Virus record (IMG/VR): IMGVR_UViG_3300025319_000005
Span: 62,001-126,000 of that record
Direction: 5' to 3' (one strand)
DNA: 64,000 nt
Made by a program: the position numbers and the translations under genes. Positions 7,828 to 64,000 of this stretch are shown here, piece by piece; the stretch's first letter is position 1, and every line of letters starts with the position of its first letter. The notes below the pieces were generated by a model. It did not search any database and was not told the DNA's origin. It saw nothing but the letters and a program-made list of their open reading frames with translations.

Positions 7828-7975
7828 CAAATAAATGTGTGAATTATATAACACAAAAATAAAATTGTGTAATAGCTACATGTTCATAAATTGCAACCTT
7901 TGTTGCGTTAAAAAGTATAAACAATAAAGATTTTAACTGTACCGACAGAATCGGCAATTTAAAAACAAAAACAAA

Positions 7976-8377
7976 ATGAATACAATTAGCAAAAAAAAGG
8001 TTAAGGTTAAAGTTCCAACTCCTTCGGCAAAAGCCGTAAAGTCAAAAACTAAAGAAGAAAAAACAACGAAAAAAGCGATAGAAGAAAAAACAAAAGATGT
8101 TGATTTGAATAATTTAACAGCAGATGAAATCTTTTTACAGACCCTAAAAGAGATAGGCGCACCTTCTCGCGTTAGAGATATGGTTGCTTTACTTAAAAAG
8201 AATAAACGAGTTTCAATAGCAAAGAAAAAATTGTTGATAAAATTTTATGCCAGTGCATCACACTTAAATCGAGATGGTGTAGTAAAAAGAACCCCGGTAA
8301 ATGGAAGTATGTATGCTTACAGTCTTTTGGGCTGGAAGAAAAATAAAACCAAAGCTAAACTATCTGTGGCTGCATAA
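7976..8377 (+). CDS. putative winged-helix DNA-binding protein, paralog 2, Lys-rich N-tail
   Basis: As above. Confidence 0.6.
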   Translation: MNTISKKKVKVKVPTPSAKAVKSKTKEEKTTKKAIEEKTKDVDLNNLTADEIFLQTLKEIGAPSRVRDMVALLKKNKRVSIAKKKLLIKFYASASHLNRDGVVKRTPVNGSMYAYSLLGWKKNKTKAKLSVAA

Positions 8378-11023: not shown

Positions 11024-11045
11024 CGTTTTATGTTTTGAGTTTTAG

Positions 11046-11119
11046 TGGAAGAAATTGGATTTGAACCAATGGCACAAACGTTTTCGGCGTTTTGCTCTAC
11101 CAGACTGAGCTACCCTTCC
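11046..11119 (-). tRNA. tRNA-Phe(GAA), non-canonical C33
   Basis: GGAAGGG TA GCTC AGTCTGGTA GAGC A AAACG CCGAAAA CGTTT GTGCC ATTGG TTCAAAT CCAAT TTCTTCC A; starts just after a promoter motif. Confidence 0.85.
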
Positions 11120-23255: not shown

Positions 23256-23424
23256 TAAATTAAAAGAAAAATCCTGTTCTGGAGCCTCCTGGCCGGATTT
23301 CCTTCAGCTTCAGTTTCTTGCGGTGAATGGGTTAGTTTAACTCCGCAAAAGTGCGTCGAACAGAAAACAAAAAACCCCCGCATTTCTGCAAAGGGCTTTC
23401 TGAACCAACCAATAAATTAAAAAG

Positions 23425-23497
23425 TGGAAAGGGTAGGAATTGAACCCACGACACGAGTGCTTTCGACACCCTGCTCTACCAACTGAGCTACCTCACC
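23425..23497 (-). tRNA. tRNA-Phe(GAA), non-canonical C33
   Basis: GGTGAGG TA GCTC AGTTGGTA GAGC A GGGTG TCGAAAG CACTC GTGTC GTGGG TTCAATT CCTAC CCTTTCC A. Confidence 0.85.
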
Positions 23498-24059: not shown

Positions 24060-24881
24060 TTAGATAAGTGTTTTAAGATACAAAACAAAAGCGTTCATAT
24101 CTACCTCATTTGCGTTTTCAAATTTATCATTTATTGAATGGCAAAGACTCCATGTATAACAAAAACCTCTTGTTATTACATTGTTCATACACACATCATT
24201 TAAAGAACCAATACAAATGCTTGGAAGTCCATTTTTTTCAAAAGTATTTGAATCACTTGGCGGTATTCTAACCCTACGGATTTCGGGCTTATCAATCATA
24301 TTTGACATTCTATAACCCATCCAATAATTTTGCCCATTTGCCGTGAGTTCTAACACAAATATTTTATTCACATTTCCATATTTGTTTTCTAATATTTGTT
24401 TAGCTATTTTTGTTGCACCCGATGTTGTTAAACTCACTCTTTCTTCCGAATCGTTAAAACATATTACTACATTGTTTGCTGGTTTTTCTTTTGATAATTG
24501 AATACATAAATCCAAGAGATTACATACACTCGCACTGTTATCTTGACATGATTCACTATTTATATTTGCAACGTCATGGTGTGCCGTAAATATAGTAGTT
24601 ATTTCTTTATTATGTCCTTCAATCTCAACTACAATATTAACTTCGGCAGGCAATCCTTCAACAAAGTCAGGAACGTCCAAAATCGGTTGATACATACTAA
24701 CAATAAATTTTATATCATTAATTTCAAGTTGGTGCATAATATACTGCACTCTATTTGTAATTGGGTTTAAGTTATTTGTGAAAGCATTAAAGTCTGCATT
24801 GAACGCACATAACTCACGGAGCATTTCATACCCATTCTTAATTTTTATCGGCTTTTCTATTTTCTCTGTATCTGTGTCCAT
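24060..24881 (-). CDS. M28-family Zn metallopeptidase-like protein
   Basis: TAHHD, QDNSASV, DSEE, SDS and late CHS-x-x-D motifs. Confidence 0.85.
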   Translation of the reverse strand: MDTDTEKIEKPIKIKNGYEMLRELCAFNADFNAFTNNLNPITNRVQYIMHQLEINDIKFIVSMYQPILDVPDFVEGLPAEVNIVVEIEGHNKEITTIFTAHHDVANINSESCQDNSASVCNLLDLCIQLSKEKPANNVVICFNDSEERVSLTTSGATKIAKQILENKYGNVNKIFVLELTANGQNYWMGYRMSNMIDKPEIRRVRIPPSDSNTFEKNGLPSICIGSLNDVCMNNVITRGFCYTWSLCHSINDKFENANEVDMNAFVLYLKTLI

Positions 24882-33701: not shown

Positions 33702-33872
33702 ACATCATCATCATTTTATTACAACATTTTTCGTATCTTCGCCTCATGAAACAAATACAAATTTCATGACCCATACAAATCTTATAACTGAAAATACAGA
33801 TTTTATGACCGGAGATATAATTTCTGTTTTTCGTATGGAAGAAAATTTCAAAGAAAAAGGAGAAAACTACTA

Positions 33873-34142
33873 ATGGAAAGCTTTTCAATAGGAGATACGG
33901 TTAGTATGAGAAGGAATGGGAATTCTATAGGAGCTGGTTATTATATAAAACCAATTTGTATTGATGGATTTATTACAAATAATAGAGTGTTTCATAGAAA
34001 TCAAGTTATTTACCAGATATTAGTAAATAAAGGCGAAACTCATCACATTGATACAAGATACAAATATGAAGCAGAATTATATACTTGCCGGTTAGTTTTG
34101 ACTGAAAAGATTAAATTTAAGATTAAAGAAGAAATGAGATGA
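33873..34142 (+). CDS. GDT...TCRxVLxEK family paralog
   Basis: FSIGDTV...YTCRLVLTEK. Confidence 0.8.
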   Translation: MESFSIGDTVSMRRNGNSIGAGYYIKPICIDGFITNNRVFHRNQVIYQILVNKGETHHIDTRYKYEAELYTCRLVLTEKIKFKIKEEMR

Positions 34143-34402
34143 AAGAGATTCTTGAAAATACATTCACGGAAAACATTGGGAACCAGGAATATCATTTTTT
34201 TGATACAGTACGTTGCGTTTCCATAACGGGTCATGTATTCGACGGATTATTATTTGAAGTTGGAAACTCTTGTTTTATTAAAGTACTTTACAATGAGTGG
34301 TTATATGAATTTAGATACAAAACTGTTAACCCATTAAGAAAAGTCCTAATAGAAAAGGTGGAAAAGATGATTTATTTAAATTTTGAATTCTCAAATAAAT
34401 GA
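34139..34402 (+). CDS. RxVLxEK-motif protein
   Basis: FFDTV...LRKVLIEK. Confidence 0.7.
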   Translation: MKEILENTFTENIGNQEYHFFDTVRCVSITGHVFDGLLFEVGNSCFIKVLYNEWLYEFRYKTVNPLRKVLIEKVEKMIYLNFEFSNK

Positions 34403-34749
34403 TAGATTGGATAAATATAAATTGTGATAAACTAATCGAAAAACCAAGTTCAGAAGAACTCAAGCGTTATATTAGAAGATTTCGATTTATTAACTTTATG
34501 CGAGGTGATACTGTTCATATTTATTCTTTAGATTCCAATCGCGAAAGTCTTGTTAAGGGTTTTTATCGAAATAGAGAAGATTATGGTGTTGCGGATTATT
34601 CTCCAAATTCTATTTTTGAGATAATTAAAAACAATGGTCAAATAATAGTTGGTACGATTGGTATTGACAATATAAACAGGAAAATAAATACCTGCAGGCT
34701 CGTATTAACTGAAAAAATAATTGAGTCAGATAAAACGATTTGGTATTAA
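34399..34749 (+). CDS. GDT...TCRxVLxEK family paralog
   Basis: FMRGDTV...NTCRLVLTEK. Confidence 0.8.
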   Translation: MIDWININCDKLIEKPSSEELKRYIRRFRFINFMRGDTVHIYSLDSNRESLVKGFYRNREDYGVADYSPNSIFEIIKNNGQIIVGTIGIDNINRKINTCRLVLTEKIIESDKTIWY

Positions 34750-34790
34750 ATTCCTCAAAAAACAATTAAACTCAAATAAAATATAAAACA

Positions 34791-35240
34791 ATGTTAGAAT
34801 TAGAAAAAATAACAGAAGCAATTATTAACATAGAAGATGGTGTTATTAATATTACAATTGGAAATATAAACAAGACTCATGATGACTTTCATGACAGAGT
34901 TCGTATTAATATAGTAGAAAACGAGATATTAATTTCGGGACATAAACTTGAATGTAAAAAGATTTATGGTCACGTTACTGAATTAAATAAAGAATTTGAA
35001 ATATATAGAAAAAAACTTATTGGATTTGAAGAAGATATAATAGAAAGTAAATTTTTATCTTGGTATGAATGTTTAACTATATCAGAATTTAAAAAAATCT
35101 TCTCTTGGAAAAAATTACGTTTTAATAAATTCAAAATGATTAAAAACGGTTATTACACAACAAAATACATCTATAAACCAGAATTTTGGACACAGAAAGA
35201 ATATAGGGCAAACAATTGGGTTATTACAGAATATAAATAA
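34791..35240 (+). CDS. hypothetical protein
   Basis: ORF track. Confidence 0.7.
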   Translation: MLELEKITEAIINIEDGVINITIGNINKTHDDFHDRVRINIVENEILISGHKLECKKIYGHVTELNKEFEIYRKKLIGFEEDIIESKFLSWYECLTISEFKKIFSWKKLRFNKFKMIKNGYYTTKYIYKPEFWTQKEYRANNWVITEYK

Positions 35241-35245
35241 TACTA

Positions 35246-35506
35246 ATGACTGAAAAAACAATATTTCACAAAGGAGACACAATAGAAATGCGTTCTGAGG
35301 GATATAGAGTCAGGTACAAATCAATTATCTCTTCTGAGCTCGATTTTAAATTCGTTAGCGCATTTTGCACTAGGATGGTTTTGACTGAAAACATGTTTAT
35401 TTCAATTAAGCTATATTTGTACACAAAAGATAAGATAATATGGAAGATTTTTTACGCGAACAGAAAGAAGAATATAAACAAGGTGATACGGTTAGTTACT
35501 ATTTGA
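35246..35506 (+). CDS. GDT family paralog (3' end possibly frameshifted)
   Basis: FHKGDTI...CTRMVLTEN; overlaps next ORF by 67 bp. Confidence 0.6.
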   Translation: MTEKTIFHKGDTIEMRSEGYRVRYKSIISSELDFKFVSAFCTRMVLTENMFISIKLYLYTKDKIIWKIFYANRKKNINKVIRLVTI

Positions 35507-35703
35507 AAGACGTTAATAGACATGTAAAACTATTTTTTAAAAGCGTAGAAACAAAGGTTAAATACGACATCATAGAGACTCTTTCGATGAAGAAAAAGAG
35601 ATTTTCATTTCCAATAAGAAATTACTCTTTAGTTTTGTGCACCTGCAGGACTGTTTTAACTGAAAAAACTATAAACTGGGATATTGAAATTGAATCAAAT
35701 TAA
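35440..35703 (+). CDS. GDT...TCRxVLxEK family paralog
   Basis: YKQGDTV...CTCRTVLTEK. Confidence 0.8.
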   Translation: MEDFLREQKEEYKQGDTVSYYLKDVNRHVKLFFKSVETKVKYDIIETLSMKKKRFSFPIRNYSLVLCTCRTVLTEKTINWDIEIESN

Positions 35704-35705
35704 GT

Positions 35706-35981
35706 ATGGAAGAATTTTTAAAAGGTGATACGATTGAATTGATAAATCCTTACTGGCGCTCAAAGCGTTTTATAGTTTCTACTGAAGTATATCACACTTT
35801 GACAAAAGACATGAAAACAATTAAAGAAACGAAATATACTATTGTATCACTAAATCTCTATAACCAAATAAGAACTAATTACGTTTCAAACCTTTATAAC
35901 ACTTTAAAAATCTTAACTTGCCGGATGGTATTAACTGAAAAAAGAAATAAAAAATTAAATTTATACTTTGACTTTGAATGA
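35706..35981 (+). CDS. GDT...TCRxVLxEK family paralog
   Basis: FLKGDTI...LTCRMVLTEK. Confidence 0.8.
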   Translation: MEEFLKGDTIELINPYWRSKRFIVSTEVYHTLTKDMKTIKETKYTIVSLNLYNQIRTNYVSNLYNTLKILTCRMVLTEKRNKKLNLYFDFE

Positions 35982-36250
35982 AAGATTTTAAATTAGGTGA
36001 TACAGTTGATATAATTAATTTTGGTACAAATAAAACTGAAGAACGAAGTTTGAAAACTTTTTTATGTGGATGCGACAAATATAAGAGTATTAATTCAAAA
36101 GGTACTGTGCATGAAAATTATTATTTTTACGCATTTGATAATCAAAATGTATTGCGTGAGTATTATGCTGGAGATTCTTATCCATATATGAGGATTTATA
36201 CCTGTAGGATGGTTCTATTTGAAAAACAAAATAAATATTTAATTTTATAA
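35978..36250 (+). CDS. GDT...TCRxVLxEK family paralog
   Basis: FKLGDTV...YTCRMVLFEK. Confidence 0.8.
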   Translation: MKDFKLGDTVDIINFGTNKTEERSLKTFLCGCDKYKSINSKGTVHENYYFYAFDNQNVLREYYAGDSYPYMRIYTCRMVLFEKQNKYLIL

Positions 36251-36504
36251 TGGAAGAGATAGAGTTTGAATTAGGAGATACGATTGCTTTTATTTCCCAG
36301 CATGGATATAACAAAAAAGGGTTTATAATATTTAAAAATTCATGGTTTTATAACAAAGATTGTTTCACCTATAGATTAATTGAATATAGCGGCAGAAGAT
36401 ATCAAGTAGATAGAGGTTGTGGATTTGAAAGCACAATGCGTACTTGCCGGATGGTTTTGTTTGAAAAGACGCATAAATGTTTGAGGAAACGCATAATTAT
36501 ATAA
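36250..36504 (+). CDS. GDT...TCRxVLxEK family paralog
   Basis: FELGDTI...RTCRMVLFEK. Confidence 0.8.
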   Translation: MEEIEFELGDTIAFISQHGYNKKGFIIFKNSWFYNKDCFTYRLIEYSGRRYQVDRGCGFESTMRTCRMVLFEKTHKCLRKRIII

Positions 36505-36514
36505 AGAAATTACA

Positions 36515-36751
36515 ATGGAAGAAATTTTATTTTTAGAAGGAGATACTATTAATTTAAAAAATAGTGATGTAAAAGGGTTTTTGTTTAAGATTCTTGATTG
36601 GATTCTTATTAATTCATATGATGATGAAACACCTTACAAAACAATAATAATTGAAAATTGTAAAGAAGAAAGAGGATTTTACATTGTGAAAAAAAAAGAT
36701 TTAAGTTTATATACCTGCAGGATGGTTTTGATTGAGAAAAATAAACTGTGA
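36515..36751 (+). CDS. GDT...TCRxVLxEK family paralog
   Basis: FLEGDTI...YTCRMVLIEK. Confidence 0.8.
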   Translation: MEEILFLEGDTINLKNSDVKGFLFKILDWILINSYDDETPYKTIIIENCKEERGFYIVKKKDLSLYTCRMVLIEKNKL

Positions 36752-36764
36752 TTAAATGAAAACA

Positions 36765-36796
36765 AAAGGCAAGTGATAATTTACCACTTGCCTTCC
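36765..36796. terminator. Terminator hairpin between convergent operons
   Basis: aaggcaagtg...cacttgcctt. Confidence 0.7.
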
Positions 36797-36815
36797 GGTT
36801 TAATAAAAAATAAAT

Positions 36816-37008: not shown

Positions 37009-37752
37009 TTAAATTTTTTCTTTTTCTTCTCCGTTGTCAGATAGTAAAGTATCACTAAAATTAGAATCCATTGTTGCAAATGATGCACTTCTCATACGTT
37101 TTACTGAGCTACTCATATTCATATAAGCCACATTAACTCCTCTTAAAGTATTAGAATAAGACATTGTATTTCCTGCAGAAACACCCATTCCTCCACCGGC
37201 TTGCATTGTATCTATATTGGCTCCAATGAATAAAAACGCCCATTTGTCATCATCTTTTCTTTTTTGAATTAAATCAAAAACAGATTTTTGGGTATATTCC
37301 TTACTGGAATTTTCCTGACCATCGGTCATGATAAGGAAAATCACTTTATCAGATTTATCTTTAGAATCTTTCCATTTAGTATAAACAGAGTCAATAGTTG
37401 CGCCAATGGCATCAAACATGGCGGTCATTCCTCTTGGAACAAATGTATCTTTATTTAATTCCGGAACATCTTTAATGTCGAGTCTTTCATGAATGATTTC
37501 ATATGTCTTACCATCAACAGCTCCATAACTGGAACCGCCATCAAATAAGCATAATGTTAATTTTGCTTTACCGGTAGATTTTTTTTGATCTGCAAGGAAA
37601 GAGTTAAATCCTTCGATTGTTTTTTCTGTTAGTCCGGAAGTTCTAATAGAAGTTGAGCGGTCAAGAACACAAATAATGTCTGTAGTTTCGTCTGTTGCTT
37701 TTGTGGTTTTCTTCTTACTTGTTTTTTCTTTTTTTGCTTTAGTTTTTGCCAT
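37009..37752 (-). CDS. von Willebrand factor A domain protein
   Basis: MIDAS VLDRSTS, T-A-M-F-DAIG, IMTDGQENSS, FLFIGAN. Confidence 0.9.
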   Translation of the reverse strand: MAKTKAKKEKTSKKKTTKATDETTDIICVLDRSTSIRTSGLTEKTIEGFNSFLADQKKSTGKAKLTLCLFDGGSSYGAVDGKTYEIIHERLDIKDVPELNKDTFVPRGMTAMFDAIGATIDSVYTKWKDSKDKSDKVIFLIMTDGQENSSKEYTQKSVFDLIQKRKDDDKWAFLFIGANIDTMQAGGGMGVSAGNTMSYSNTLRGVNVAYMNMSSSVKRMRSASFATMDSNFSDTLLSDNGEEKEKI

Positions 37753-41399: not shown

Positions 41400-41723
41400 A
41401 TGAAAAAAGTATTATTAGTTATTGTTGCATTTTCGTTGTCGAATTGCGACATAAGCGTTAGAAAAACAAACGCACAATCAGAAATATTTTATCAGACTTA
41501 CACAAGAGAAATAGTAGAATTCGATGGAATGAAATATTTACTTTTATATGTTGTTAATAAATCATCGCAAACCGGATATTCAATAACGACAATTAACCTA
41601 ACAAAAGACAAGTTAGAAGTTGAATTATTACGGCACCAATTGACAGTCGTTAATTGTATATTCAATATCCAATTTGTTTTTTACCAACTTATTACTATAA
41701 ACGGTTCTGACCACATAAGATAA
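41400..41723 (+). CDS. putative lipoprotein
   Basis: MKKVLLVIVAFSLSNC; 3' end overlaps convergent cytolysin-like gene. Confidence 0.6.
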   Translation: MKKVLLVIVAFSLSNCDISVRKTNAQSEIFYQTYTREIVEFDGMKYLLLYVVNKSSQTGYSITTINLTKDKLEVELLRHQLTVVNCIFNIQFVFYQLITINGSDHIR

Positions 41724-42749
41724 TGGAACCCCTGTTTTAAGGTCAGATGATTGACCTAATAAAGTAGTTAAAGAGCTTAAAGAATTGCTGTTAATTGCTG
41801 AAAAAGTACTGGTAGTACTACCTCCAAGTGCAATTACTTTAATTGACAAATTTTCTAATGTAGATAAATAATTCGCATCAATATTTCCAGATACCGGTAT
41901 ACCATCAAAAGAAACATTAATTGCAGCTGTTATTTCTTCTTTTGAAGAAGTAGATTCAATGAGTAGATAAAATACACGTCCATAAGTTACATCTGATACA
42001 TAACATGCCGGATTATCTTTGCCAACATACTTAGCAAGATCCATAGGTTTAACGGTTGGGTCAAAGAAATCATCATATGATGGTGGTATATCATAACTCA
42101 TAGTAAAAAATGTTTGTTTTAATTCTACCAAATAATGATTTGCTGTTGAATTATTTAAAAAAGACAAATTAGCAACTATAGTTACCGGTGAAATTTCAAC
42201 ATTTAATCCAAGTGCTAATGATAATTCTTCATTCGTTTTAACTAACTCATGATTAAAAGTAAATCTTGCCGGCATAACTTTATTGTTACTAAAAATAATA
42301 TTATTTAATGCTTGTGTAACTACGCTTTTTTTAATTTCATTTAAATTCACATACACAGAGCCGGAACCATTAATAATATCAATAGACACTGTTCCTCCAC
42401 CACGTTTTACTGCAATAACATCTGGAGTTGCATTATTTAAAGAAGCTCCTTGTAATAAACTTCCAGGATAAACTACTGATACGTTAGGGTCATATAATGG
42501 ATAATACATATTTCCTTGCAAAACACTCCAAGTACTATTTGTACAATTCCAATTACCACTATCAACAGGTACTGAAGTTGTATTTACATCAATAAGATTT
42601 TTATAATCACTAAATGGAGCAAATTCACCTCCTGATTTTAAAACTTCTTCATATGATACATTTTCACTTGGTGATACGTCTTTTTTACAAGAGTTTAAAG
42701 TGATTAAAGTAATAAACATTAGACTGATAAAATAAAAGTGTTTTTTCAT
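41628..42749 (-). CDS. thiol-activated/cholesterol-dependent cytolysin-like (CDCL) lipoprotein lacking domain 4
   Basis: Lipobox LNSCKKD; VYPGSLLQG, YVSDVTYGRVFY, IALGG and GVPLSY motifs of CDC domains 1-3; no undecapeptide. Confidence 0.85.
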   Translation of the reverse strand: MKKHFYFISLMFITLITLNSCKKDVSPSENVSYEEVLKSGGEFAPFSDYKNLIDVNTTSVPVDSGNWNCTNSTWSVLQGNMYYPLYDPNVSVVYPGSLLQGASLNNATPDVIAVKRGGGTVSIDIINGSGSVYVNLNEIKKSVVTQALNNIIFSNNKVMPARFTFNHELVKTNEELSLALGLNVEISPVTIVANLSFLNNSTANHYLVELKQTFFTMSYDIPPSYDDFFDPTVKPMDLAKYVGKDNPACYVSDVTYGRVFYLLIESTSSKEEITAAINVSFDGIPVSGNIDANYLSTLENLSIKVIALGGSTTSTFSAINSNSLSSLTTLLGQSSDLKTGVPLSYVVRTVYSNKLVKNKLDIEYTINDCQLVP

Positions 42750-42885: not shown

Positions 42886-43188
42886 ATGAATGAATTTTCA
42901 AAATACGATACTGTTATGGCTATAAAAGGAGATAGACTTAGATTTGAAAAAGGATTATATCTAACTTCTTTTAAACGGCATGTTGAATTTGAGAGTGAAT
43001 ATAAAACAATTATTTTGTATAATACTGAAAGAAAAAGAATAATAAAATTTTATGGAAAGAGACATATAATCAGAATTTTTTCTACACGAATGGTTTTAAC
43101 TGAAAAAAGCATAGTTAAAAAAGTAACAATAGCTATTGAAAATAACGTAGGATTTAAAAATAGAATAAATAGTAATACTTTTTTTTAA
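42886..43188 (+). CDS. dispersed GDT...RMVLTEK family paralog
   Basis: FSKYDTV...STRMVLTEK; start reassigned. Confidence 0.7.
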   Translation: MNEFSKYDTVMAIKGDRLRFEKGLYLTSFKRHVEFESEYKTIILYNTERKRIIKFYGKRHIIRIFSTRMVLTEKSIVKKVTIAIENNVGFKNRINSNTFF

Positions 43189-43286: not shown

Positions 43287-44084
43287 ATGAAATTAAAATT
43301 AAACACTCTATTAGCTAAGACAGACCACTTAGCTACGTCTTACAAAAACTCTATTAAAGATTACATTGGTTTCTTCAAAGATAAACAATCCGCTTTTAAA
43401 GGCGAGAAGAAAACTTATGATCCAAAATCAGGGACAATCGACATTCCTTCTGAAAGAGGAAATAAAATGGTTGTTACAACCGTAAAAGAAAAGCTTGACT
43501 GGTTAAAAGAAACCAATACCGAATATATTAATGCGTTATTTTCTCAGGAAGCTACAAACGCAAATGGATTAGCTAAAGCGAAACTTGCAATTGACGGAAT
43601 TGAATTCGGAGAATTTTCTTCTCTTGAGCTTTTGCGTTTGAAATCTCTTATTGAAAACGGTGAGCTTGAACAAATGTATGCCAACATTCCAGTTCGTGCT
43701 GACGATGAAGAATGGAATAAAACAGATGAAGACCAATACGTAGAAAGAGAAATCTTTGAAGGTAAGAAACAAGAAGGGATTAAAAAATCCATCACAAAAG
43801 AAAGTTATATACTTTCTGACCCCAACATCAAAGAATTAAAAGATTCTTCTTCTTATAAGCCACAAATGGCTTCTAAAGACACTATTATTGAACTTGGGGA
43901 TTATTCTTATCAAAAATTTTCCGGTGAATGGTCTCACAGAGAAAGAGCAGAATTGCTTCGCAGAAGAACAAAACTTTTGAGTGCTGTAATTGAAGCGTTG
44001 AAAATTGCAAATGAAGCAGAAGTAATTAATTCAAATATGACTGCAGATAAGTTGTTCAATTTTTTACATACCGGTAAAATTTAA
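43287..44084 (+). CDS. conserved-looking hypothetical protein upstream of ncRNA locus
   Basis: 265-aa helical/coiled-coil protein MKLKLNTLLAK...KFSGEW...ALKIANEAEV. Confidence 0.85.
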   Translation: MKLKLNTLLAKTDHLATSYKNSIKDYIGFFKDKQSAFKGEKKTYDPKSGTIDIPSERGNKMVVTTVKEKLDWLKETNTEYINALFSQEATNANGLAKAKLAIDGIEFGEFSSLELLRLKSLIENGELEQMYANIPVRADDEEWNKTDEDQYVEREIFEGKKQEGIKKSITKESYILSDPNIKELKDSSSYKPQMASKDTIIELGDYSYQKFSGEWSHRERAELLRRRTKLLSAVIEALKIANEAEVINSNMTADKLFNFLHTGKI

Positions 44085-45969: not shown

Positions 45970-46947
45970 TTATTGTAAATTTATTATGCTTTTTATTTTA
46001 GTATAATCAAAATCTATAATAAATAAAAAATTATATCCATTTTTTATTGTATTTCTTCTTTTTGAAAAGTTTTTCTTTAAATCATATCTTAAAGTATAAA
46101 GTGATTTTATTTCAATAATTAAATTATATTTTGGAAGTAAAAAATCTGAATAATAACATCTTTCTTTATTATCAAAAAAATATTTAATAGATTTTCCTTT
46201 TTCAACTTGTATTTTATTGTTAATGCAAAAATCTAAAAAATCTTTTTCATTTAAACCTTGATACTTTAATCCAGTACCAATATGTATTCTATTTCTAAAA
46301 GCGTTTTTTAAACTTTTTTGATGTATTTTATCATTGTGCATTGCGCTTTTAACGCCATACCTTTTTAAATTTGTTTCTTCTAATCTTGAAATCTGTAAAT
46401 CTCTTAAATATTGTGGTCTATCTTTTTTAGTTTTTGAAGTTCTTTTAATTATTTCATCTTTTTCTTCAAATGATTTATTGTTTACTGTAATTTTCGTTTT
46501 TTCTTTATTGTTGAAGTTTTTGTCACCATATTTTTTTTCTTTAATTATGCTGTGTTTTTCTCTTTCATTTTTATCTGAAAAATTGCTTACATAACCATAT
46601 TTCTTTAAATTTGTATTTTTTGCTTTTTCTATATTAACATAATTCTCATCACCATATTTTTCAAATAATGTGTTTTTATTCTTTCTTAAATTGTGTGCAC
46701 ATTGTTCAGAACAAGAATATAAATTATATTTTTTTATGTTTTTTAAATAATGTCTATATTGTATATTTTTTTTATTTCCACAACAATCACATTGTACATC
46801 AATTCGTGAATGACTGTTTGGTGAAAGGTCTTCAACTTTAACAGTTATATTAATACCAGCAGTTTCAAAATCATATCCTTTATTTTGATAATATTTTAAT
46901 AATGTATTGTTTGATATTCTTGTATTTGCTTTTGTGCTTAAAATCAT
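45970..46947 (-). CDS. putative free-standing endonuclease: Zn finger + (T)NLKKYG repeats + PD-(D/E)XK domain
   Basis: CDCCG...CSEQC; TLFEKYG/TNLKKYG/TNLKRYG repeats; YYSDF...IIEIKS. Confidence 0.75.
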   Translation of the reverse strand: MILSTKANTRISNNTLLKYYQNKGYDFETAGINITVKVEDLSPNSHSRIDVQCDCCGNKKNIQYRHYLKNIKKYNLYSCSEQCAHNLRKNKNTLFEKYGDENYVNIEKAKNTNLKKYGYVSNFSDKNEREKHSIIKEKKYGDKNFNNKEKTKITVNNKSFEEKDEIIKRTSKTKKDRPQYLRDLQISRLEETNLKRYGVKSAMHNDKIHQKSLKNAFRNRIHIGTGLKYQGLNEKDFLDFCINNKIQVEKGKSIKYFFDNKERCYYSDFLLPKYNLIIEIKSLYTLRYDLKKNFSKRRNTIKNGYNFLFIIDFDYTKIKSIINLQ

Positions 46948-46997
46948 AAAATATACTTTTTTATAAATAGTATATTTTATACATAACACACTAACAA

Positions 46998-47213
46998 TCA
47001 ATCATTTTTTATTCGTTTAAGTATTTGTTCATTTGTTTGTAAATCACTACTACTTACATCGTCTCCAATTATGTAATCTTGCCAACCTATTTCATAAGCT
47101 TTTTTTAATAAAGGACTTTCATTAAAAGATAAAATATTTGTATCATCACCAGAAAAGCAATCATCCCATCCTAATTTATATGCCTGTAATATTATTTCTT
47201 TTTCTTCATCCAT
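46998..47213 (-). CDS. hypothetical protein
   Basis: AY-x-x-GW-x-D duplicated. Confidence 0.65.
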   Translation of the reverse strand: MDEEKEIILQAYKLGWDDCFSGDDTNILSFNESPLLKKAYEIGWQDYIIGDDVSSSDLQTNEQILKRIKND

Positions 47214-47664
47214 TATTTTCTAATTTTTCAGTCAAAACTTTTCTTTCTAAAGAAACACCTCCCATATTTTCTATTTTCACAATAAGAGCATTTGCATTTA
47301 AAATAATTTCTTCCAACTCTTCAAGTTTTTTTATTATAGATTCACAATAAAGTTTATACGCCAAAAAAGGACTGTCATATTTTTCAACATTACTATTTGG
47401 AGCAGTCCAAAATAAGGGGCAAGATTTCTCGCCAGAAAAATCCATTGCAAAAAAACTATTATCAGCAGAGAAAAAAAGTATTTTATTATTGCTTGTTATA
47501 CGAAATTCTTTCAAACCTTTAACTTCTTCACATTTAGCTTCTTCAATTCCAAGCCTATTTAATGCATTAATTATTCTTGGATAAATTTGCTGAGCCATCA
47601 ATTCAGCTAAATATATATTTTTAGGGTCGCTTCTATATAATTTATTTTGTAAATCTGTAGCCAT
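47206..47664 (-). CDS. hypothetical protein with C-terminal RKVLTEK
   Basis: ORF track. Confidence 0.7.
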   Translation of the reverse strand: MATDLQNKLYRSDPKNIYLAELMAQQIYPRIINALNRLGIEEAKCEEVKGLKEFRITSNNKILFFSADNSFFAMDFSGEKSCPLFWTAPNSNVEKYDSPFLAYKLYCESIIKKLEELEEIILNANALIVKIENMGGVSLERKVLTEKLENNG

Positions 47665-48311
47665 TATTTAGAAAGTTCTTTTAACTTGTTTTCTAATTCA
47701 ATTTTAAATGTAAGATATTTTTCTCGGAAGTATTCCCATTCTGTTTCATCACATTCGTTTATTTCTTTATGAAGATAATTTGCAGCTGTAAAATCCACTA
47801 TTTTTCCATATTCCATAATTTGGATTGCAAAAATAAGCATTTTAAGTGAATGAAATATACTTTTTAATGCACGATATATATCCCCTTCATTAAGTTTATG
47901 TTTTCCACCTCTCCAGCTGTTAAATGATTGAGCTATAATATTTTTAGCAAGCTTCTTTTTGTTTAAAACAAATTTCAAACTTTCTTTTTCCTGGAACCTT
48001 GCCCATGTCGGAGAAAAGAAACACTCAAGGTTCATGATGTCATGATTTTCTAAATCACGTTTGAATTTATCCGGAGTAATAACATGAATATTGAGACGAC
48101 AATTATCTATTTCTGCTGTCATTTCGTTATGTTCTAATAGTGCAGCTCCAATAATTATAATATCGTAATCAGAATCTACTCTATTGTTAGAGTATACTCT
48201 TGATCCATATAAAAATATGTTTCTTATTTTAATAGGATGAATTCCGGCTTTTTCTATGATTTCTGCAACCGTAAATGGAATATCAAATATTGTACGTGTT
48301 GTTGTGTTCAT
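47664..48311 (-). CDS. pol-beta-superfamily nucleotidyltransferase domain protein
   Basis: FLYGSRVY...DSDYD followed by helical domain. Confidence 0.85.
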   Translation of the reverse strand: MNTTTRTIFDIPFTVAEIIEKAGIHPIKIRNIFLYGSRVYSNNRVDSDYDIIIIGAALLEHNEMTAEIDNCRLNIHVITPDKFKRDLENHDIMNLECFFSPTWARFQEKESLKFVLNKKKLAKNIIAQSFNSWRGGKHKLNEGDIYRALKSIFHSLKMLIFAIQIMEYGKIVDFTAANYLHKEINECDETEWEYFREKYLTFKIELENKLKELSK

Positions 48312-48690
48312 TTTTATATTTTTCGGTTAATACTTTTCTATCATTTAAAAATTGCAACGGAACCTTACTTAATGTGACGTAATAGATTTTCCACTTTTCA
48401 GTTTTATCATTAAAAAAGAATGAAATAGTTCCAATCTTATCATGAGAAATATATTTAGAATTATTTAAATTATTTTTATAATTAAAAGGCTCACTTATAA
48501 AAAAATAAATTTGTCTTCCATTTTTATCTCTTCTTATTGATTTATCTTTTTCAAAATATCCAATATTTTTATTGTTAAAATATACAAAATAAAGATTCCA
48601 AATTTTAGAAGGCCTTACTTCAAATTCTTTTAATTTGTGTTTTTTACATACAAAATACGGATAAACTTGTTTCATGATATTAATTATCAA
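48283..48690 (-). CDS. hypothetical protein with C-terminal RKVLTEK
   Basis: ORF track. Confidence 0.65.
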   Translation of the reverse strand: MIINIMKQVYPYFVCKKHKLKEFEVRPSKIWNLYFVYFNNKNIGYFEKDKSIRRDKNGRQIYFFISEPFNYKNNLNNSKYISHDKIGTISFFFNDKTEKWKIYYVTLSKVPLQFLNDRKVLTEKYKNEHNNTYNI

Positions 48691-49216
48691 ACCAAAAAAC
48701 TATCCTTACATCATCCAAATTTCCAAGTTCTGACAATTCTTCAATATGTTTACAAAAAGTACCATCCGGACCACCAATAATGTCATAATAAGTTTTGTCT
48801 TCCCAATCTTCATCATACTCTCGTGGAAATGATATTTTTTCGAATATAACATTCCTTGAATTTGTAGAAAATTCCTGTTCTGGTGTTCTTAAATCTTGAT
48901 TAAAATCAAATTCAACCAATTCTCTAAGCGTTACAAAAGAAATAGTATGACCATCACCTTCCCATCCTATCCAGTTGCTTTTAACTGCAATAGAAACATC
49001 AATCGGCAATTTATAAGAAGGCTCTTTTATTGGTTTTACGTTACTTCTAACACCAGCTAAAAAACCAAACATACTATAAGAGCGCCAATCAAAAGGTGAA
49101 CTGGATTTTTCCGTATCAAAACTATATGATGGAGTAAAATGTTTACCGGTAAATAATTCCCATTTACATTTACCGTTTTTTCTTGTTTCAACGTGAATAT
49201 GAATATCAGCTCCCAT
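48680..49216 (-). CDS. phage hypothetical protein (MGADIH...RIVFWFDN)
   Basis: Recurrent phage-family termini; internal RNVIFEK. Confidence 0.8.
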   Translation of the reverse strand: MGADIHIHVETRKNGKCKWELFTGKHFTPSYSFDTEKSSSPFDWRSYSMFGFLAGVRSNVKPIKEPSYKLPIDVSIAVKSNWIGWEGDGHTISFVTLRELVEFDFNQDLRTPEQEFSTNSRNVIFEKISFPREYDEDWEDKTYYDIIGGPDGTFCKHIEELSELGNLDDVRIVFWFDN

Positions 49217-49902
49217 TATTTTAAAATATTTACTTTTTCAATTAAAACATTTCTTGAATATGTATTTGCTTTTAAAATATAATAGTTTAACATATCTTCA
49301 TATTTATCATGCTTTCTATCTAAATATACACTCGCATCTTTATATAACCAATTTAAAATACTCATAATTTGTTGATTACCTTTTTTATAAACTCTATATA
49401 TCATTTTCATTTTTCCATATCCAAGGACAATATTTGTTTCTTTCAAAAATATATCATAAATTTTTTTCATAAGCTGTTCAGTTCCAACAATACTAAATTG
49501 ATAACGTCTATAATTTTTATCCATCGTATAACAAATAGAACCATCTCCATCAAACAAACCTCTAATAAAATGCCTATATAAATGCTCTTTTATAATAGGA
49601 AATTTAGCTATTTTACTTTTTCTTGGAACGACTCCATAGTTGTTTAAATTGTTTATTATTTCTTTTTTTGTACAACTGAAATAATATATAGGCCCAAATC
49701 CATGGTCTGTAATTGAAATTGGTTTTTCATCTATATAAATTAATTTAGATAACTTTTCTAAGTGTCCCTTATCTTTAATATTAACTCTTAAATTCTTATT
49801 TCCAATATTACAACCATCAGCAAGAATAAATCCTAACCAATATGCTTCTTCTTCTGTATTTATATTTTTAAATACATTTTTGTTATATTCATATTTTTTC
49901 AT
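49216..49902 (-). CDS. LAGLIDADG homing endonuclease
   Basis: AYWLGFILADG and HFIRGLFDGDG; YLDRK; extra C-terminal RNVLIEK. Confidence 0.9.
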   Translation of the reverse strand: MKKYEYNKNVFKNINTEEEAYWLGFILADGCNIGNKNLRVNIKDKGHLEKLSKLIYIDEKPISITDHGFGPIYYFSCTKKEIINNLNNYGVVPRKSKIAKFPIIKEHLYRHFIRGLFDGDGSICYTMDKNYRRYQFSIVGTEQLMKKIYDIFLKETNIVLGYGKMKMIYRVYKKGNQQIMSILNWLYKDASVYLDRKHDKYEDMLNYYILKANTYSRNVLIEKVNILK

Positions 49903-53959: not shown

Positions 53960-54175
53960 TTAATTATCTGATTTTTCAAATAGCACTTTTCTTGTTTGAT
54001 TCTCTCTATATATTATATCTGTTCTAAAATTATCATTATTTGACCCAAATACCGTTGTGTTCATACTAATAAAGGCGTGTCCCTCTAAAGAAATAAATGC
54101 TAAAGCAGAACTTATCGCTTCTGAATCTATTTGTTCTTGACTACTATGAGATGTTATTTTTATATGTTTTAGCAT
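53960..54175 (-). CDS. hypothetical protein with C-terminal RKVLFEK
   Basis: ORF track. Confidence 0.7.
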   Translation of the reverse strand: MLKHIKITSHSSQEQIDSEAISSALAFISLEGHAFISMNTTVFGSNNDNFRTDIIYRENQTRKVLFEKSDN

Positions 54176-54178
54176 TAT

Positions 54179-54421
54179 TTAAGGTCTAAATCTTCCAAAG
54201 TCAATTATTTTTTCAGTCAATACTATTCTGGTTATTTTATTTTCTCCTTCAATTGTCGCTGAATAATGAGGGTAAATGTTAAATTTTATAGAAAATTTTT
54301 TAATTTTTTGTCCAGAATTTGCAAAAAAAGCAAAACACTCTTCTATTTCTGGCGTTATGAAATGTATTTGAAATCCGTCAATCGGATTAATTATTCCATT
54401 TATTATCATTTCTTTAGTCAT
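54179..54421 (-). CDS. hypothetical protein with C-terminal RIVLTEK
   Basis: ORF track. Confidence 0.7.
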   Translation of the reverse strand: MTKEMIINGIINPIDGFQIHFITPEIEECFAFFANSGQKIKKFSIKFNIYPHYSATIEGENKITRIVLTEKIIDFGRFRP

Positions 54422-63504: not shown

Positions 63505-64000
63505 ATGGAATTTGATGAATTGATAAGTAATATTGATTTACATTCTCCGTTCCATAAAATGCTGGAAAAAAATAAATTAACAATTACACAAAATGAATTA
63601 TTAAAATATGTTGATGATAATCATTTTACAATAATACATAAAAGAAGGCAAGAAGGAGTTAGTACTGCGTTATCAGTTTATATTTTGTGGTTATTAATTA
63701 ATAATCCGGGACATTCAATTGCTTTGATATTTTCTCAGACAGAAGAGAGGGAAAAATTCAGACAAATTATCAACATGAATTTAACTTTACTTGAAAAAAT
63801 ATTTAAACTTCATGGCTATGATATGGTTTTAACAGCTAAAAACCATAACATAAATGAAACTATATTTCCAAATGGTTCGCGTATTCATTATTGGTCAAAA
63901 AACAATAAACATGCCGGCAGGGGTCATAGTTTAGATTTTGTTTATATATCAGAAGTAACTCACCAAGATAATTACATGGAACTAATTCAATGCCTTTATC
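63505..64000 (+). CDS. terminase large subunit-like ATPase domain (truncated by window, degenerate motifs)
   Basis: Hand translation: HKRRQEGVST, FPNGSRI, AGRGHSLDFVYISE resemble T4 gp17-type Walker A/B region. Confidence 0.7.
   Translation, partial: MEFDELISNIDLHSPFHKMLEKNKLTITQNELLKYVDDNHFTIIHKRRQEGVSTALSVYILWLLINNPGHSIALIFSQTEEREKFRQIINMNLTLLEKIFKLHGYDMVLTAKNHNINETIFPNGSRIHYWSKNNKHAGRGHSLDFVYISEVTHQDNYMELIQCLY

Follow-up and report, generated by a model that had tools for sequence, protein, structure and literature searches.

The capsid-targeting peptide of phage T4 ends in a protease site of the form (L/I)-x-E, which is the cut specificity of T4-type prohead proteases. Encapsulin cargo loading and microcompartment encapsulation also use short conserved peptides, placed at either end of varied cargo proteins and read by one shell protein, and encapsulin shells have the HK97 fold, as do phage capsids. 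The internal proteins of T4 are described in PMC3012670 as diverse and sharing only a targeting peptide, and in the account given in PMC10052503 the prohead proteases of giant phages cut after Glu in X-x-E, often at several sites per propeptide. Here we describe a tandem family of small genes in a 64,000-nucleotide stretch of phage DNA (the window; bases 62001–126000 of the 212,632-bp IMG/VR record IMGVR_UViG_3300025319_000005, ~30% GC), whose products carry a common seven-residue motif close to the C terminus. Judged from sequence, this motif is a portable tag: it is not specific to the family, and about 50 further proteins from unrelated families carry it too, at one end or the other. All open reading frames (ORFs) were read under translation table 11, and positions are those of the window unless the full record (G000) is named.

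A tandem family with a predicted SH3-like fold

The ORFs named in a preliminary description of the locus were all found on the plus strand. Together with one outlying member, identified by a family-profile search of the phage's own genome, the array and its surroundings read as follows.

33766–33873, plus strand: remnant of 35 residues holding only the N-terminal third (FMTGDII), without tag; profile match over positions 2–33, E 1.4e-3
33873–34142, plus strand: family member, 89 residues; tag RLVLTEK at 34089–34109 (ORF list, alignment and profile)
34139–34402, plus strand: divergent member, 87 residues (FFDTV ... PLRKVLIEK); tag at 34337–34357
34399–34749, plus strand: family member, 116 residues, with a 30-residue N-terminal extension; tag at 34696–34716
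34791–35240, plus strand: non-member ORF of 149 residues that splits the array, without tag, family match or homologue in related contigs
35246–35506, plus strand: decayed copy with a shortened middle, a tag variant RMVLTEN (N for K) and a weak profile match (E 1e-3); it shares 67 nucleotides with the following gene
35440–35703, plus strand: family member, 87 residues; tag at 35647–35667
35706–35981, plus strand: family member, 91 residues; tag at 35922–35942
35978–36250, plus strand: family member, 90 residues; tag at 36206–36226
36250–36504, plus strand: family member, 84 residues; tag at 36448–36468
36515–36751, plus strand: family member, 78 residues; tag at 36719–36739; source of the first structure model
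36763–36797, no strand assigned: terminator-like hairpin with a 16-bp stem, separating the array from the convergent minus-strand genes
42886–43188, plus strand: eleventh, outlying member, 100 residues from its ATG, adjoining the DUF7873 gene; tag at 43087–43107

The preliminary description had counted seven clear members, one divergent member and a 35-residue copy, with fixed ends, variable middles and mostly translational coupling. All of these copies are present in the ORF list and alignments, the contrast between ends and middles is visible in the alignments at a mean column identity of 24–25%, and the gene junctions, mostly overlaps of 1–4 nucleotides or gaps of 2–10 nucleotides, agree with coupling. 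Conservation is confined to G-D-T-(V/I) near the start, K-G-F about 10 residues further on, and (T/C)-R-x-V-L-x-E-K near the end, with the D and T of the first motif and the R, V, L, E and K of the last being near-invariant. Since these residues persist at such low overall identity, and since a search of the phage genome with the family profile gives the copies E values of 1e-9 to 1e-28, the family stands above chance. Several codons are used at each motif position within the array; as they vary freely at synonymous positions, the constraint acts on the protein and not on the DNA.

Structure prediction of two members with very different middles gave a shared fold, in line with the SH3/KOW-like barrel that had been guessed for the family. 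The AlphaFold2 model of the 36515–36748 product has a mean pLDDT (predicted local distance difference test) of 81 and five strands in SH3 topology (residues 11–14, 20–32, 38–47, 53–59 and 65–67), followed by the tag (69–75) as lower-confidence coil; that of the divergent member (34139–34399; pLDDT 79) shows the same barrel plus an N-terminal hairpin. Both are thus modeled as five- or six-stranded SH3-like small barrels. An exhaustive structural search matched both models to 12 identical PDB chains, and the matches included EF-P KOW domain I, Tudor, Sm/Lsm/Hfq, NusG/Spt5 KOW, the BirA C-domain and the MscS beta-domain, at Z 5–6.8, a range that for such predicted structures denotes only a common fold arrangement. 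Foldseek (PDB and viral models) and the ESM Atlas returned only generic SH3-like or uncharacterized small phage proteins. Because the structural matches are generic, they support the fold class and no specific family: the members are predicted SH3-like small beta-barrels of the KOW/Tudor/Sm class. In both models the N-terminal GDT(V/I) is predicted to form barrel strand 1, and the tag begins directly after the last strand, outside the barrel and at low confidence (mean pLDDT of the last 10-residue blocks 55–58, with the final residues of the second model at 40, versus 84–94 for the barrel core). A homodimer prediction for the family barrel scored 0.00, which speaks neither for nor against pairing.

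Sequence-profile searches of Pfam, PHROGs, NCBIfam and PDB gave no match to the family, and the KOW domain (PF00467) had no match at E ≤ 1 in a Pfam scan of ten array ORFs. Searches of 50,697 phage records with the array (blastn and tblastn) were equally negative, and scans of IMG/VR and JGI with the family recovered only the phage's own records. Five other contigs holding the array, among them a 503,412-bp NCBI contig, are 100% identical to the window. More distant relatives were found by an exhaustive profile search, which gave 161 metagenome representatives at E ≤ 1e-3, nearly all of 66–120 residues (the longer exceptions include a few spurious repeat proteins and one two-domain fusion); a word-indexed search gave 18 proteins. 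The tandem layout recurs in related contigs, with 20 tandem copies and two near DUF7873 in L013, about 10 copies in L030 and about nine in L031. The SH3-like family and its tag are without description in the libraries and literature searched.

A portable motif across the genome

Weak profile matches clustered elsewhere in the genome led to a regular-expression count of R-x-V-[LI]-x-E-K. The 212-kb record holds 61 in-frame sites, compared with 0–2 in 20 shuffles, and a back-translated DNA pattern of the tag matched 56 times in the record and not once in the reversed control. The same DNA pattern had no match in Prevotella phage Lak-A1 (541 kb) or in LR756500.1 (462 kb). When positions were freed one at a time, R, V, L/I, E and K each proved essentially invariant, with T, C or S preferred before the tag and Y, F or S after it. 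Genome-wide, every one of the six Arg, four Val and six Leu codons appears at the sites. A repeat or recombination site in the DNA was ruled out, given the free synonymous variation and the DNA differences between paired tags, and so was a polyprotein read through recoded TAG, since the tag-bearing ORFs end mostly in TAA or TGA.

About 27 sites lie 4–16 residues from the N terminus and about 30 lie 3–50 residues from the C terminus. Once the tag is masked, the 60 proteins group into families of 9, 6, 4, 4, 3, 2 and 2 plus about 30 singletons, and the N- or C-terminal position is constant within a family, save for one mid-chain exception in each of two families. Tagged proteins make up ~56 of ~389 crude ORFs (~14%). 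In the related contigs L013, L030 and L031 the tag is likewise found on proteins outside the SH3-like family, and a pattern scan of IMG/VR returned further contigs with several tags, including one, L056 (IMGVR_UViG_3300035701_000572), with seven.

Most tagged proteins are without a recognizable family. One corresponds to the N-terminal half of phrog_10141, its tag lying beyond the profile-aligned domain. The largest N-tagged family, of nine, lies outside the window (record 31.1–35.8 kb, minus strand), and several of its members carry a second peptide, approximately LETHVKLEGYTP, in 2–4 copies in the C-terminal part. Two groups of tagged genes in the window are listed here.

47206–49902, minus strand: block with four C-terminally tagged genes (47206–47664, 48283–48690, 48680–49216 and 49216–49902) and, among them, an untagged gene of 215 residues (47664–48311)
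53960–54421, minus strand: two small genes (71 and 80 residues) with the tag near the C terminus; their relation to the SH3-like family is uncertain

The last gene of the block (49216–49902) encodes a LAGLIDADG homing endonuclease whose tag lies beyond the domain, five residues before the stop. A DUF7487 protein resembling a homing endonuclease is encoded at 45970–47001 (minus strand).

Two tagged proteins resemble pieces of head and packaging proteins. A TerL-like N-fragment of 223 residues (record 125505–126176, plus strand, starting at window position 63505) has lost the Walker A lysine (QEGVST) and ends eight residues after its tag; its C-terminal half was not found in the 212 kb. Outside the window, a Gp23-like gene (record 171024–171836, minus strand) consists of a long N-terminal extension followed by just the first part of a major capsid protein of T4 type, and carries two tags. 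This N-fragment is a stand-alone gene conserved in other contigs (P0161–P0173; homologues 36–88% identical, 211–329 residues): all 10 homologues read, of 13 with a Gp23 domain, carry a tag just ahead of a short variable tail as well as one or two within the N-terminal extension. Its synteny is conserved in a non-structural neighborhood that includes a methylase and a PcfJ-like gene, and a second Gp23 gene was not found within 10 kb. The separate T4-like contig L056, which encodes a Gp20 portal protein and an intact TerL, has three tandem SH3-like genes with the tag (976–2005) and, 0.6 kb downstream of its T4-type portal gene, a gene (7923–8273, minus strand) for a 116-residue protein that opens with the tag and continues with Gp23 positions 301–350 of 376, above the Pfam cut-off. 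The capsid pieces of L056 and of the record studied here belong to different phages. Group I or II introns were ruled out as the cause of the tagged capsid and terminase fragments, as an Rfam scan of L033, L034, L056 and the window at gathering score detected only tRNAs and no intron RNA.

Divergence, turnover and genomic setting

The array region is bracketed by two conserved genes.

37009–37752, minus strand: VWA-domain protein (phrog_7371)
43287–44084, plus strand: DUF7873 protein, 44% identical to its counterpart in Lak megaphages

Compared with the related contig L030, the VWA gene is 87% identical, the DUF7873 gene 90% and an upstream gene of 279 residues 64%, while the seven canonical members reach at best 30–37%, no better than their best matches within their own genome. 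The divergent member at 34139–34402 has reciprocal best hits in three related phages (45–53% identity; clade support 99/96), and the member at 42886–43188 has a one-to-one orthologue across the relatives (97/95). The family tree shows two one-per-genome clades, formed by the divergent member and by the member adjoining DUF7873, together with an eight-gene expansion specific to L013; 19 sequences form an unresolved star, their terminal branches measuring 1–3.7 substitutions per site. Rough pairwise Nei-Gojobori ratios of nonsynonymous to synonymous divergence (dN/dS) are 0.26–0.67 for the family versus 0.11–0.17 for the flanks, none above 1, with dS of ~1–1.5 and thus near saturation. The family therefore shows fast divergence and birth-and-death turnover, and its raised dN/dS does not prove positive selection.

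The preliminary description had proposed a variable-binder repertoire under diversifying selection with a constant adaptor end, and this holds in part. The fold and the constant end stand, the latter more strongly than proposed; its specificity to the family does not, given the roughly 50 tagged proteins of unrelated families. Diversifying selection was not borne out by the ratios above. Copy number does vary across relatives (~9 to 22), and one-to-one conservation of each member, which would have spoken against the repertoire, was found for two members and is absent for the seven canonical ones, which are without recognizable orthologues.

Most large proteins of the phage are without a PHROG or Pfam match. 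Close kinship to Lak megaphages was ruled out: matches are limited to some of the genes, DUF7873 among them, and Lak-A1 is without the family and the tag; the helicase of the phage also finds its best matches elsewhere. An intact ORF of 373 residues (41628–42749, minus strand) holds a thiol-activated (cholesterol-dependent) cytolysin domain (Pfam E 3.3e-35), an unusual cargo for a phage from aquifer sediment, and a 273-residue protein (24060–24881, minus strand) holds a partial M28 peptidase domain (E 5.7e-10). Two tRNA-Phe(GAA) genes lie in the window (11045–11119 and 23424–23497, minus strand); the 212-kb record has 18 tRNA genes in all and no suppressor tRNA.

Possible roles of the tag and comparison with known systems

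A tag this invariant suggests a common reader. We tentatively favor the reading that the array is a hyperplastic repertoire of small binders bearing a lineage-wide targeting or processing tag, in the manner of the T4 capsid-targeting sequence, which we consider possible though short of probable. One common factor would read the tag in trans, most likely a head-maturation machinery of T4 type; by way of the tag, a large and variable range of small proteins would enter the prohead, be trimmed and then be delivered with the DNA. The variable barrel loops may bind variable, probably host, targets, with the tag as the constant address. Head targeting or processing is favored because the tag contains the (L/I)-x-E pattern, because several copies lie in the N-terminal extensions of capsid-like proteins, and because the T4 internal proteins offer a precedent. 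The core V-[L/I]-x-E-K is present at every tag site, and, as with the T4 peptide, diverse proteins share only a short terminal sequence, here at 61 sites in more than 25 sequence families.

Several observations weigh against this reading. No prohead protease (PF03420) was matched in the 212 kb searched, which is ~42% of the 503-kb genome. The T4 targeting sequence occupies the N-terminal ~10 residues, whereas half of the tags, including all in the SH3-like family, are C-terminal (~30 against ~27 N-terminal). Invariance of R (P6), V (P4) and K (P1') goes far beyond what prohead proteases are known to require, and the ~14% of crude ORFs that are tagged lie far above the known count of cleaved head proteins. 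The homing endonuclease and the TerL-like fragment, which lacks the Walker A lysine, have no obvious head role, and positive selection on the binders is unsupported, dN/dS never exceeding 1.

It is unlikely that the tag is instead a short linear motif for another hub, for example a degron through which an AAA+ protease of the host or the phage would clear early proteins on schedule, or a peptide that docks on a host machine. Such a motif would sit well in the terminal, flexible, low-confidence segments where the tag is found, its carriers are mainly small accessory proteins in arrays resembling early genes, and its invariance suggests a single reader. On the other hand, the tag may lie anywhere from 3 to 50 residues from the chain end, capsid-like proteins conserve it internally, and to our knowledge it is unlike known degrons or clamp-binding motifs.

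The main rival to head targeting is a joint at the protein level, in which C-tagged and N-tagged modules pair by antiparallel strands (R opposite E, V opposite L) and so assemble split proteins, possibly combinatorially; we rate this as less likely still. The near-equal numbers of N-type (~27) and C-type (~30) tags would be expected of it, as would proteins tagged at both ends (P0116; L013 12899–13312) and the invariant residues, which appear self-complementary. The capsid N-fragment is tagged near its C end, and the capsid C-fragment of L056 has an identical RIVLFEK close to its N end. The TerL-like N-fragment, too, ends in a tag, and neither introns nor DNA repeats able to rejoin the genes were found. 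The two capsid pieces come from different phages, however, with no matched pair seen in one genome; near-identical tags would pair promiscuously, to the detriment of an essential capsid protein; and the extra tags in the capsid-like N-terminal extensions, which lie a short way in from the N terminus, are more reminiscent of cleavage sites.

The view of the array as a self-contained family, its own fixed ends forming a family-specific adaptor and its middles under positive diversifying selection, is improbable. It draws on the fixed ends and variable middles of an SH3-like fold, the raised dN/dS and the seven members without orthologues. Yet the C-terminal end is common to dozens of unrelated families, so that family specificity of the tag is already refuted; the N-terminal end is a predicted barrel strand; dN/dS never exceeds 1 at saturated dS; and two members are conserved orthologues. 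More improbable again is a protein-joining device in which a serine prohead protease would cut C- and N-tagged proteins at E|K and the pieces would be joined as a split hairpin or by transpeptidation, building the capsid protein from separately encoded pieces and mixing ~30 front modules, including the SH3-like barrels, with ~30 back modules. Least probable of all is that the tag has no function in trans and is a terminal strand favored on structural grounds, whether by descent or by convergence, or else the vestige of a DNA element, in an array of decaying duplicates: the remnant, the decayed copy and the very long terminal branches would fit, but more than 25 sequence families share the five invariant residues while their synonymous codons change freely, two other huge phages lack the motif, it lies outside the modeled barrel, and dN/dS is below 1.

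Were the tag a targeting or processing signal, it would take the principle of the T4 internal proteins to an extreme, with about one gene in seven addressed by one seven-residue code, and the packaged or injected proteins of uncultured huge phages could be listed directly from sequence. It would also be a compact natural tag usable at either terminus, and the SH3-like array a ready-made library of small variable binders, probably against host defenses. If it joins protein pieces, it would be a new way of expressing genes in pieces.

Among known folds, the family shares the five-strand topology of KOW, Tudor and Sm barrels, and its G-D-x-V in strand 1 and K-G at the start of strand 2 recall the KOW motif; unlike those domains it has no sequence-profile match, and the likeness is one of predicted fold. 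Encapsulin and microcompartment peptides differ from the tag in that their sequences are unrelated to it and are not protease sites. The propeptide sites of giant phages (A/S/G-x-E in phiKZ, 201phi2-1 and SPN3US) fix about three residues and are almost always N-terminal; no protease was found here in 212 kb. They resemble the present case in that capsid-like proteins here bear one to three tags, and the account in PMC10052503 describes cleavage after Glu, several sites per N-terminal extension in head proteins, and ejected proteins that form paralogous families. Compared with the T4 internal proteins, the tag is longer, far more invariant and found at either end genome-wide, on ~60 proteins in 212 kb, and any packaging, cleavage or shell binding of its carriers is putative. 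The phage does have T4-type head genes, and IPI–III and the hyperplastic IP loci of T-even phages, in the description of PMC3012670, likewise comprise many small, diverse and fast-evolving proteins that share only a short terminal peptide.

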